A DNA stretch of 60,825 bases, filler included, from Hausera hauseri (GCA_046269625.1; 11 parts of 11 records of this genome joined end to end with filler, not necessarily neighbours in it); one strand, 5' to 3'; positions 30,883 to 36,342 are shown, counted from the whole stretch's first letter. Numbers and translations are program-made. The notes: generated from the letters alone by a model not told the origin.

Positions 30883-30897
30883 TACCCGGTATCCCCT

Positions 30898-33800
30898 TTA
30901 AACATCTTGATACTGATCGGATTGTTCAACTAAACGATTGGGTTCCAAAATTTCCTCCCTCCTTGGAGCAAACCGGTCCAAGCACGTTTCTTCGCTACTA
31001 TTTACCGTTCTTGAATTGATCCAATCATCCGACCCTCCTTCTATTTTACAGATTTTATTGATGGGTCGTCGATAAATTTCACCATTCTGTAAAATCTCAA
31101 CTACTCGCACGACCCCATCTTGTCCTGGAAATATCTTGGTTATCTCAGCTATTGGCCAACGGTTCCTCCTTTCTGTCGTATCTAACACCCAAACTCTGTC
31201 TCCAGGAATAATATCTGTTCTCCCACTCTGCCATTTTTCTTTTGTCCTCCAAGATATCAATAATTCTTTTCTCCATCTCCTCCAATATTCCTCTCTTATT
31301 AACTACACATATCGCCATCGTGTGTTAACACTGCCCTTTGTTGTGCCTGTAAAGTGTGAATTAATCTCGGCATTGTGACCGGCTATGATAAAGTAATTAG
31401 GCGTGAGGACGATGTCATCCTTGCTATCGGTTGATGCTACCGTAAGTGGTCTGCTATTTGTTATTCCCTCGATTTCACATAATATAGTTGATAATTCTTC
31501 ATCAGTAACTTGAGCATCTCCCAGGATTTTGTTCAGTGCCCTTTTTACAGACTTTATTAATGCCTCGTAAGCTCCACCAAAGTGTGGTGCACCTGGAGGG
31601 TTAAATATCCATCGAATATGATCTTTCTCCAAGTTTAATCTCGTCGAGTAACTATCCACTTGTACTTCATAAATTTCATTATCAGCTCCGACGAAATTCG
31701 TTCCGTTATCCGAAACGACTATTGATGGACGCCCCCTTCTTGACATGAACCTTTTAAATGCTCGGATAAATGAATCCCTGTACAAACCTAAAGCTATTTC
31801 CAAATGTACACCTCGACAAACTAGACATGTAAAAAGGCAAATGAAACGTTTCGCTTGAGCATGTCCCCTTCCTTGTTTGGTACTTATTGGTCCTGCGAAG
31901 TCTACACATATCTTGTCGAAAGCCTTTAAAGGAAGTTGGAACTTAAATGCTGGTAAAGGTGCCATTTTGACATTCATCCCTTTTGCTTTATCTCTTTGAC
32001 ATGTCTTGCAATAATTTTGATACGATTTTACTAATTTCCGCATCCTGGGGAACCAGAACCTTTGAGACAATTCAGCTACTTGGTGATTTATCCCCGCAAT
32101 ATGTTTCTACTTCATATGGGTGTCTTCTATTATTAGTTTTGTGATTCGGCTCTTCGGCGACAATATTATTGGGTACTTAAATCCCCAACTTAACCATGGT
32201 GTCGTAATTAATCGGCTGTTAGAACGTAGGATGCCTTCAGCGTCTAGAATCGGGTCTGCTTTGGATATCGGACTTTTATTGTTTATAGCTTTTTCTTCTT
32301 TAAGTAATTTTATCTCGTTCTGAAATTCTTGTTGTTGGTCTAATTTTATGAGTTTCTTCTCAGCCTTACTTTTAAGATATGACGGCTCTACATCTGTTAT
32401 GTTTATTCCTTCATCTTGTATTAATTGTTGTATCTTCGAGTCCACAGAATTCTGCCACCGGGATTTTTCATTCGTTAAACTCGTTTCATTTTCGTCATTA
32501 TTTATTAAGAAATTTTTTATCTCTACCTCCCGGTCATATCCCATTTCTGACCGTGTGAATAAACTAACAGTTTCTTTCCTTCTTTCTATATCCATTTTCA
32601 CTGCGAATTCTTGGGGTTGTTCCGGCCAACTAATTTTCTCATGAGACAGAAACTTCGGTCCATGCCACCAATTATAATTCCCCTTTACTATCTGTATAGA
32701 TTGACCTCTTGACAACGCGTCGGCAGGGTTTTTGCTTGTTTTCACGTATTTCCACTGAACGTTAGAAGAGTGTTCTTGTATATACGCTATGCAATTTGCT
32801 ACAAATGTCTTATAGTGTTTACTGCACTTCCGAATCCAGTGTAATACATTTTTACTGTCGGTCCAGAGTGTAACTCTTTTATTCTTCCCTTCCAGAGCTT
32901 TTATTAGTCTGTCCTTCAATTTAGCTCCAATACAAGCCACTAGTAACTCCAACCTGGGTATCGCAATCGATTTTACGGGAGTTACCTTTGCTTTAGCTGC
33001 TACCAACGTAGTGGAGAAACCTCCGTCCTTTTTCCTTGTCCTAACATAACCTACCGCGCCGTATCCTAATCTTGAGGCATCACAAAATATATGTAGCTCC
33101 AAACTTTCGTCCTTGTCTAATCTCAAGTATCTTTCGATCTCTATTTCGTTCAATAAATAGGTTTGTTCCATCCAAGATTTTATCCTCTTCATTGTCTCCT
33201 CTGGTCGTTTTTGATCCCATCCATAATTCCCAATCCATAACTTCTGTGTCATCATTTTTCCAATTATGGTGTAACAACTTAAGAATTCCAACGGATCATA
33301 TATTTTAGCTACCGCACTTAGTAATGTTCTCTTTGTAATTGTCTCTTCGATTATGATCCTTTTATCGAACGAATATTTGCCTTTTTGTGATAATTGTGCT
33401 TTTTTCCAATATGTTATATTCCTTCGATCTCTTTACATATGGGATTTCAGCGACAAGTTGTTCTGAGTTAGTTGCCCATTTATGTGGGACCATTCCTGCT
33501 CTATTCCATATCGTATTCAGTCCATGATATAATTCTACTACCGCTTTTTCTGTAGGCACTGCGTCTATGCAATTATCCATATATGTTGAACACGTTATGG
33601 TTTCCACTGTTCTCGGATATGTCTCTTTAAACTTTTCTGCATTAACCCTGTATACTAACTGTGCTAGAAAAGGAGAACTGTTTAGTCCGAACACTAATCT
33701 ATTAAATTCATAAGAAACTTCCTTATCACTTTTTCTCCATAAGAAACGTAGGTATTTTTTATCTGCTGAATCTACTGAGATTTGAAGAAACATCTCATGT

Positions 33801-36342
33801 ATGTCGCAAATTAAGACGTACTTGTTACAACGCATTCGGAGTAAGATGTCAGCTACGTCAAGCTGTAATTTTGGGCCGACCTCCAAGAAATCATTTATAC
33901 ATTTTCCTTTATTCTTTGCTGCTGCGTCGAATACTATTCGACATTTTGTGGTGTCTCGATCAAACCTAACTACGGAAAAATGCGGTAATAACCACTTTGT
34001 CTCTCTTTCCTCTTCTTTCGATACTTCTCTTATGTATGATTTTTCTTCATATTCCTTAATAACCTTACTATATTCGTTTTCTACACTAACATCTTTATCT
34101 AATTTCTTTATTTCCATGATGTGTCAAACCCACTAAAATCTGGATGCCTTTCTTCCTTCCAGGGTAATTTAACACAAAATCTATCGTTTTCATATTTTAT
34201 TCCATTCGTTACCTTTTCCAACAGTTCAATCTCCAAGTTGTTTAACTCCGTTTTTTCCTGGAACCCCTGTTCTGCTTCCCATAATCTGTTCCAATCCTCT
34301 TGCACTTCATCGGTTCTTTCCAAAACGTTCTAACAAAATTTGTCCTTACCTTTTTCCTTTCATCTCCGATCACACCAACGCACGTCCATCCGAGTGGAGT
34401 CAATCTGGCTACCGGTTCGTTTATTTCTCCTGCTATTTCTTTTATGGATCTATGTAGGTGCATGTAGTTTGCACCTATTATCCCATCAACCGATTTCGGT
34501 GATTTTTGAGTAGCGAATTTTATATTTCTCAAATGTGGCCATTTGTTTTTCTCGACCTCCCAATTCACGGCCATCATTTCCCCAGCTGGATCATGTAGGA
34601 CCAACGCTTCAAATGGGATGTTAACCTTCCCGTTCTTACTTAACAAATTCATCTTTACTCTTTTCATTTTCGATTTTGTTGTTTCTCCACCTACCACCAT
34701 GACAGACACATTTTCCTGATCCCCTACTAATTTTAATTGTTCTGCAACAGAGCGTTTGACGAATCATTCTGTGCTCGCGAAGTCTAATAACATGCATACG
34801 TTTACCTTTCGCTCTCCATTCTCCAACCATACGTCTACAGTACGCAATGCAATTTTGTTTCCTGTCGTTTTCCCTTCTGATCGTTGAATTACATACGTGT
34901 TAACCTGTGCTTCAATATCGTCCCCCACGTTTTCCTCTTTGTTTACTCTTTCTTCTGTATGACGTGTATAGAACGCTTTTTCTTGCTTTTTATAATTATC
35001 CTTTTTTGGGGTGATTCACGAACAAAGTGGCATTTTTCTCCCTACCTACAATTTCCATTCAGACAGTATTTACATATTCGTGTTTCAACTTTCCTTTCTT
35101 TCTTGTGTAAGAATCGACAGGTATTTCCGAATTTACAAGTCCCCTCCTTCTCAAATTCCCAACAAAGCATTTCCTCGTTCTTATCCGTTGTTTTAACACC
35201 GTTACCTTTCTTTGTGTTATCTTGAATTCGGATCCTATTCTGATTATATTGTCTATCTATGTAAAAGCTCTTTCGCGATTCTTTGTTGTGCCTCTTGTTT
35301 CCGAACAGTGTGTCATTTTTATCCGTAGAGGGGAGATCACTTTCAATTCTCGAACGATTGTTAGTTGTTGTTTGTTTAAATTTACGTTCATCTCCAAATC
35401 CTGAGGGTGATCTAGCCTCGAATGTGTTGAAAACGTTGATACCTCTAATTCTTTCAATGGTGCTCTTTCGTATACTCGCTTATGATTCCACCCAAGTTTT
35501 CAATTCTTCAACTGTCCGATTTAACCTTTTTTCGGCGGCATATCTCTCCCATAACAATACTATGGACTCTGGAAGCTTCTCTACAAGGCTTTGGTATAAC
35601 AACCCTCCACCTAATTCTTCTTTCCTTCCCAAATTTTTCAATCTTACTGATATGCCATCTAACAATGCAACGAATCGGTCTAGGCCTACGATGTCTTCTT
35701 CCCCTATTGGTTTAAAACGCATCACTTCAGTCATATAGGCGGCATAACACCGTTGTTTCCCTCCATAATAAGAATCCAGTTTTCCCATTGTAGCCTTATA
35801 GCCCTCTTCTGATAAATCAAAATTCTCAATCAGCCTTTTCGGTTCTCCATATACACATCTTTCTAACTGAAGCTGTTTGCATATGGTAGACATTGACGTT
35901 TCGTTCATACACGTATCGAACATTCTTCTCCATCGATAATATTCAACGACTGCTCCACCAAATTGTGGCAATTCCAACCTTTGTAACTTTGGCAGATTTA
36001 ATTTTTCTTTCATTTCGCTATTTACTGTCTTTTTTGTAGCGTTGGCGATCAATTTGTTATCCCGTAAGCTGCGTTCATAAACTATCGTGTTGATCTTTTC
36101 ATTTTGCTCGTCTAACCTCTCCATCTCGTTCTCCGGTAATGTTTCTTTTTCAACTTTCTAGCTGCGGTAGTCAACAAACACAATTCCTCTTAGACATTTG
36201 CGAAAACTCTTTCGTAACTTTGATAAAATACTTCGTAGTCGTGCTCATTCAAATTAACATCCATTAATCTCCTTCTAATCGAAGCTAATTCATTTATAGT
36301 TCTTCGTCGTTCAACAATGCGTTCTTCGAGCGCTTCCGCAGT
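30898..36342 (-). mobile_element. Degenerate BEL/Pao LTR retrotransposon (gag-pro-RT-RNaseH-INT)
   Basis: DUF1759-like gag LPKLQRLELPQFGG; protease ALRTVDV...LLDFAS and PVARLTPLGW; RT WLLPHFSV..TTKCRIVFDAAA, FGLNSSPF, TYMDN; LHIFCDAS, IPRLEL, NPADALSRG; integrase VDFAGP, SDNGTNFVGA, LTPN; C-terminal RWPIAEI..PGQDGVVRVV. Confidence 0.95.
35018..35164 (-). other. Tandem CCCH zinc fingers within the BEL/Pao Gag frame
   Basis: Manual translation: CWEFEKEGTCKFGNTCRFLH (C-x8-C-x5-C-x3-H), linker KKERKVETRI, then CKYCLNGNCR*GEKCHFVR (C-x7-C-x5-C-x3-R); same frame as gag ORF 35480-36124. Confidence 0.85.

Follow-up and report, generated by a model that had tools for sequence, protein, structure and literature searches.

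What occupies the nucleocapsid position of a Gag protein that carries no zinc knuckle? The question is raised by a decayed long terminal repeat (LTR) retrotransposon of the BEL/Pao (Belpaoviridae-type) group, whose internal region lies on the minus strand at 30883-36342 of a 60,825-nucleotide stretch of DNA from Hausera hauseri (GCA_046269625.1; 11 parts joined end to end with filler), hereafter the window. Few features of retroviruses and LTR retrotransposons are as conserved as the nucleocapsid zinc knuckles of the CCHC type (named for their Cys and His ligands). At the corresponding position of the window element we find two zinc fingers of the CCCH (C3H1) type, one intact and one broken, and we consider it probable that the element is a decayed copy of a small, distinct BEL/Pao lineage in which the triple Cys-His box was replaced by a C3H1 pair, set among basic residues and taking the nucleocapsid role. 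The fingers had been noticed earlier by a model that worked from this DNA alone (the sequence-only reading), and we state below where our analysis agrees with that account and where it departs from it. Coordinates are those of the window; features of the element are on its minus strand, the translation of which was scanned with Pfam in stop-free pieces.

Two CCCH fingers at the Gag-protease junction

The assignment to BEL/Pao, already made from the sequence alone, holds because of domains other than the Cys-His box: Pfam places a DUF1759 Gag, a protease, a reverse transcriptase (RT), Peptidase_A17, an integrase and DUF5641 in colinear order on the minus strand, which is the order of the family. 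The capsid-like DUF1759 domain (35962-35537; E 8.5e-13, 49 bits against a cutoff of 25.4) sits within a Gag core at 36157-35483 that is 64% identical to residues 77-299 of P0001, the closest relative described below, and that ends at a TAA (35482-35480). Beyond this stop the gag frame was said to stay open for 103 codons, and the minus-strand translation agrees (35479-35171); the segment forms a poorly conserved linker between core and fingers, which shows indels and 30% identity relative to P0001. Next comes finger 1 (35164-35105), an intact C-x8-C-x5-C-x3-H as described from the sequence alone, which the translation reproduces and the Pfam zf-CCCH profile (PF00642) recognizes at E 4.5e-6 and 26.9 bits, above the cutoff of 20.5. 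A basic linker of 10 residues (35104-35075, by translation) leads to finger 2 at 35074-35018, which has the spacing C-x7-C-x5-C-x3 and is broken in the two ways that had been reported, by a TAG at 35044-35042 and by an Arg (35020-35018) at the position of the fourth ligand; all three of its Cys residues align with those of an intact finger 2 in P0001. A basic tail (35017-34946) completes the region, ending at a TAA (34945-34943) near which the shift to the protease frame occurs, and over the 90 residues from 35215 to 34946 there are 25 Lys and Arg vs 11 Asp and Glu. The start of the protease (IALRTV, from 34853) does lie 165 nt downstream, as had been claimed, but in another frame. P0001 is colinear, and in a single frame, across the point that matches the TAA at 34945-34943.

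In a regular-expression scan of all six frames of the window element, finger 1 was the sole match to a CCCH pattern. The same scan returned no knuckle of the form C-x2-C-x3-5-H-x3-5-C in any of the six frames, in line with the earlier statement that none lies between Gag and protease, and the triple Cys-His box, including the third-box pattern, was absent from every frame. Of 2000 random sequences matched in composition (first-order Markov resampling), only 3% show a CCCH pattern somewhere in the six frames. The window fingers, however, lie in frame at the Gag-protease junction and align Cys for Cys with those of relatives, and this position, taken together with the Pfam score and the alignment, rules out chance. 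The finger module fills the nucleocapsid slot, from the capsid-like core to the protease, and no other zinc module remains there.

The usual occupant of this slot is well documented. The triple Cys-His box, given as CX2CX3-4HX4C, CX2CX2-4HX4-5C and CX2-4CX3HX4H, is a hallmark of Pao/BEL elements (PMC554778), and in a comparison set of 55 other Gag homologues, each with at least 150 residues past the Gag match, we found a CCHC knuckle in 52, two knuckles in 49 and the third box in 47, so that the normal state assumed in the sequence-only reading is confirmed from both sides. The median distance from Gag core to first knuckle in these classical Gags is 50 residues. When four classical Gags were scanned with Pfam, none matched zf-CCCH at E 0.01. 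We note that four proteins of the classical type (P0024, P0114, P0129 and P0149) contain a CCCH-like spacing, C-x6-8-C-x4-C-x3-H, made up of the final Cys of knuckle 2 and the third box. Finger 2 of the relative P0151 (below) is spaced in this way, which may hint at a route by which CCCH fingers could form in place.

Relatives with the fingers and the Gag tree

With the Gag core as query, an exhaustive HMMER search returned 1751 proteins at E up to 0.001. The best match, P0001, is 65% identical and comes from an ENA metagenome contig of 4408 bp. In a single open reading frame (ORF) it holds DUF1759, the linker, a pair of CCCH fingers that are both intact (residue 405, C-x8-C-x5-C-x3-H; residue 435, C-x7-C-x5-C-x3-H) and the protease, the very combination that the sequence-only reading had proposed to look for. 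Pfam scores its zf-CCCH match at 43 bits (E 4e-11) over two stretches, and neither a CCHC knuckle nor a triple box is found in P0001. Identity between the window element and P0001 is 64% in the Gag core, 30% with indels in the linker, 51% in the fingers with every Cys aligned, and 64% in the protease, the regional pattern to be expected if the fingers were under constraint before the window copy died. The second-best match, P0002, stops short of the finger region. The third-best, P0003, is a fragment, and its cluster mate P0151 (JGI/IMG, 326 residues, about 45% identical) spans the Gag core, two fingers and the start of the protease. Finger 1 of P0151 (C-x7-C-x5-C-x3-H) is called by Pfam zf-CCCH at 34.2 bits, its finger 2 reads C-x7-C-x4-C-x3-H, and no triple Cys-His box is visible in its sequence. 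The linker between the fingers has 10 residues in P0001 and the window element and 3 in P0151. Close family members with normal knuckles in place of this segment would have marked it as a one-off; what P0001 and P0151 carry in the same place is the CCCH pair. Judged by predicted domain content, three diverged members therefore share one architecture without CCHC, and CCHC is normal in the other relatives.

The fourth-best Gag relative, P0004 (39% identity; JGI/IMG, contig of 2153 bp), has by eye a Gag core, then a region like that preceding the RT, then an unrelated coiled coil, with neither fingers nor protease, and looks like another deleted or chimeric model. Further searches added no members: homology searches with the 145-residue finger piece, with residues 300-540 of P0001 and with P0151 gave one extra match, a plant C3H1 protein; a metagenome scan with the gag alignment gave no confirmed locus; and scans of viral contigs for the lineage were empty. 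A degenerate DNA pattern of the lineage-specific protease start matched two metagenome loci, L001 at 1842-1879 on the plus strand (55% GC, the motif frame full of stops) and L002 at 1554-1591 on the minus strand (54% GC, no reading frame recovered), both of which we regard as chance matches, with no retroelement frame.

CCHC is the general state of LTR retroelements, and the gag tree (55 rows, 173 columns) lets the CCCH state be placed against it. A branch with 98% support in the Shimodaira-Hasegawa-like approximate likelihood ratio test (SH-aLRT) divides 48 rows (47 with CCHC, 1 without fingers) from the window element, P0001, P0002, P0151 and P0004. On the window's side of that branch there are also P0014 and P0081, long-branch CCHC sequences of pseudoscorpion origin, which a branch of 95% isolates from all else. 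The window element and P0001 pair with 97% support. Among the rows of known state a single change explains the distribution of CCCH and CCHC, and monophyly of CCCH is not rejected in the approximately unbiased (AU) test (p-AU 0.84). The tree thus appears to fit a single origin of the CCCH state, and since CCHC rows flank the CCCH group on both sides, and given the generality of CCHC, CCCH is most simply taken as derived.

Role and origin of the finger pair

We infer that the CCCH pair does the nucleocapsid job in this lineage and that a cellular C3H1 gene was its source. The Gag, fingers and protease of an intact member would be translated as one polyprotein, as the one reading frame of P0001 suggests, and after cleavage by the protease the CCCH pair and its basic flanks would bind single-stranded RNA of the element, serving both packaging and chaperoning during reverse transcription. 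The aromatic residues beside the ligands would stack on bases as they do in cellular C3H1 fingers; base stacking by such aromatics is known from TIS11d, MBNL and CPSF30.

Several points weigh against this account. The CCCH trait is present in three sequences only (the window element, P0001 and P0151), of which P0151 is a fragment whose finger 2 is recognized by spacing and not called by Pfam. The tree is unrooted and was made by a quick method. Support for a nucleocapsid role of the fingers comes from sequence, and the basic stretches alone could provide nucleocapsid function. An AlphaFold2 model of P0151, built from an alignment of 5 rows, has a mean predicted local distance difference test score (pLDDT) of 46.6, with the fingers below 35, and is too poor to test the fold. 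Finally, the ORF of P0001 is a chimera, in which the retroelement part (from Gag through fingers and protease to the beginning of the pre-RT region) continues with no intervening stop into some 310 residues of CFAP58, such that residues 690-1000 (about) correspond to the CFAP58 coiled coil (PDB 9fqr, E 3.3e-39; Pfam CFAP58_CC). The two parts meet at a short stretch of similarity, which suggests an assembly or transcript chimera on the 4.4 kb contig.

Which kind of finger is present is less simple than the TIS11/ZFP36-like label given in the sequence-only reading. In sequence searches of the PDB, window finger 1 is indeed closest to tandem zinc finger (TZF) proteins, with matches ranging from 1e-7 to 9e-6 (9y10 at 1.2e-7, 6nzl at 1.9e-6, TIS11d at 4.6e-6 and TTP at 8.6e-6), but P0151 is closest to finger 2 of CPSF30 (E 4.5e-7) and to MBNL1 (2e-4), with TTP and TIS11d only at 0.16-0.93, and P0001 returns a mix of KIAA1064, Yth1, 9y10 and TIS11d. 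These searches point to no single donor family. The layout of the TZF family is two C-x8-C-x5-C-x3-H fingers, a linker of 18 residues and an (R/K)YKTEL lead-in before each finger. The element fingers depart from it, with C-x7 in finger 2, a linker of 10 or 3 residues and no YKTEL lead-in, and the label therefore stands for the resemblance of one finger and falls for the layout. Ligand spacing of the form C-x7-8-C-x4-5-C-x3-H, with a zf-CCCH score above the cutoff, is found in window finger 1, P0001 and P0151; judged by spacing and profile, the element fingers are generic C3H1 fingers and not members of the TIS11 family.

A bolder form of the proposal is that the lineage, having exchanged its zinc-knuckle nucleocapsid for a tandem C3H1 module of the cellular type, picks out its genomic RNA by a sequence-specific single-stranded motif, in the manner of TTP, CPSF30 and MBNL. 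We hold this only tentatively and think it rather unlikely.

We also think it unlikely that the pair is a product of the ancestral Cys-His box region itself, formed in place through drift in ligand spacing or duplication of the third box and never captured from a cellular gene. The finger-like spacing of knuckle 2 plus third box in the four classical Gags mentioned above speaks for such a route, as does the want of a single donor, with TZF proteins matching the window element, CPSF30 and MBNL1 matching P0151 and a mixture matching P0001. Against it, all three members match the zf-CCCH profile (up to E 4e-11) and the four classical Gags have no match; the profile cleanly separates classical boxes from CCCH fingers and so counts against the in-place route. 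Moreover, the first knuckle, the conserved RW...AK spacer and the HH-x-LLH tail of classical Gags are wholly absent.

It is also conceivable that the fingers are an accessory module that binds host mRNAs, or hinders RNA-based host defence or mRNA decay, and that the basic stretches do the packaging. TTP/TIS11, ZAP, CPSF30 and MBNL are examples of cellular C3H1 proteins that regulate RNA of host and viral origin, which together with the resemblance of window finger 1 to TZF fingers lends the idea some appeal. We nevertheless regard it as improbable: it is speculation, we see nothing like a CNOT1-binding tail or other effector region, and the module sits exactly in the nucleocapsid slot, with no other zinc-binding nucleic-acid module left. 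An artefactual or one-off origin of the fingers, whether by misassembly, by insertion of part of a host exon into one copy or by chance likeness to the motif, is essentially refuted, for although the window copy is heavily decayed and P0001 shows that chimeric ORFs occur in databases, the same module stands in frame at the same position in three sequences of 45-65% identity drawn from separate sources (the window, ENA and JGI/IMG), and against a chance rate of about 3% per piece in any frame there is a Pfam score above the cutoff.

The replacement of the triple box by a C3H1 pair thus seems to us the most probable of these readings. CCCH fingers in the Gag of an LTR retroelement are not described in the full-text literature that we searched, a corpus that is incomplete and has the repeat databases Repbase, Dfam and GyDB outside it, and an uncommented database entry of a BEL element with such a Gag may exist. 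A survey of LTR retroelement markers by Llorens et al. scores states of 0 to 3 CCHC arrays, and the term CCCH is absent from it (PMC2774666). If our proposal is right, a lineage that kept its capsid core, protease and Pol and traded its knuckles for C3H1 fingers would mean that the RNA-binding module of Gag is swappable, and would have arrived independently at a second way of packaging and chaperoning a genome. Selection of the genome by a sequence-specific motif, should it occur, would be a mode of packaging not yet described among LTR retroelements, and the swap would then also be a natural experiment on the interchangeability of nucleocapsid modules. The fingers would also link a retroelement Gag to the host finger class of mRNA decay and antiviral sensing, making questions of RNA specificity testable, and annotation pipelines keyed on CCHC would miss or mis-split Gags of this kind.

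The window copy and known systems

The window copy is dead: over the whole element we count six in-frame stops or more (at 36192, 35482, 35044, 34766, 32109 and 31305) and at least four frame changes, in addition to the broken finger 2 and an RT box that differs from YVDD. An alternative genetic code as the cause of the in-frame stops was considered and ruled out, all three stop codons being present alongside the frame changes; programmed termination of gag at 35482-35480 was likewise ruled out, P0001, P0002 and P0151 having a sense codon at the same position. The gag is more damaged, and longer, than had been thought. It was taken to be broken by a single stop, whereas a further TAA lies at 36192-36190, followed by a frame change near 36157-36140, both ahead of the Gag core. 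It was also taken to start at the ATG at 36124, whereas Gag continues upstream in another frame to the edge of the piece: an N-terminal part at 36342-36193, cut by that edge, aligns with residues 14-61 of P0001, so that the ATG is not the native start, and 36189-36115 aligns with residues 63-78. Listed ORFs understate both the length of gag and its damage.

The protease (34940-34245) is 64% identical to residues 473-683 of P0001, with a weak Pfam match to Asp_protease_2, and is interrupted by a TGA at 34766-34764. Its motifs, IALRTV (34853-34836), LLDFAS (34790-34773) and IIG (34481-34473), are of a family common to the window element and CCHC-type relatives. Where the window copy has LLDFAS at the active site, the motif in P0001 and in many relatives of the CCHC type is LLDD, then A or G, then S; Ala/Gly variation in this motif is common in the subgroup, and the Phe is seen only in the window copy. 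The RT lies in yet another frame at 34123-33365 (Pfam RVT_1, E 3.1e-10). Its active-site box reads YMDN (33583-33572), either a lesion of the window copy or a trait of the lineage; the box of Pao and BEL is YVDD (Sinbad paper). Next come the segment with the BEL/Pao signature domain Peptidase_A17 (33432-32110; Pfam E 2.6e-45, 154.7 bits), which includes a weak RNase H match, and then the integrase, with its H2C2 zinc domain and rve core, and the C-terminal DUF5641 (32106-30901; Integrase_H2C2 6e-9, rve 0.0037, DUF5641 5.4e-21), a segment split by the stop at 31305-31303. The expected Pol order of protease, RT, RNase H and integrase, with the Peptidase_A17 signature and DUF5641 tail, is thus present by Pfam. 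One end of the piece falls inside Gag and the other directly past DUF5641, and no long direct repeats were found within 30883-36342, which places the LTRs outside it. G+C content over these positions is 38.4% and the observed/expected ratio of CpG is 1.06, i.e. CpG is not depleted, which may point to a host whose CpG methylation is not heavy. No part of the piece looks human.

Classical BEL/Pao elements (Pao, Sinbad, BEL, Roo, Max and Ninja) have the same parts in the same order, from the DUF1759 Gag through a protease with ALRT... and LLD.. motifs, RT, Peptidase_A17 and integrase to DUF5641, but they carry the triple Cys-His box where the window element has two C3H1 fingers. The triple box is not universal in the group, for which Tas of Ascaris, a noted exception without it, provides the precedent (PMC554778). 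TZF proteins (TTP/ZFP36, TIS11d and nematode TZF) share with the element a finger 1 of C-x8-C-x5-C-x3-H with the pattern C-K-F-G...C-R-F-x-H, and differ from it in finger 2 (C-x7 in the element, C-x7-C-x4 in P0151), in linker length (18 residues, not 10 or 3) and in their YKTEL-type lead-in. CPSF30/Yth1 and MBNL1, which are the best PDB matches of P0151 and are among those of P0001, resemble the element in having closely set fingers of mixed spacing; they are, however, cellular multi-finger proteins outside any Gag or protease context, and the similarity covers about 25-30 residues per finger. Lastly, errantiviruses, spumaviruses and Ty1 also have Gags without CCHC, and so the nucleocapsid knuckle can be dispensed with or replaced. 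In those systems the knuckle was lost and basic or disordered regions are found instead, whereas in the element described here the slot is filled by another class of zinc finger.

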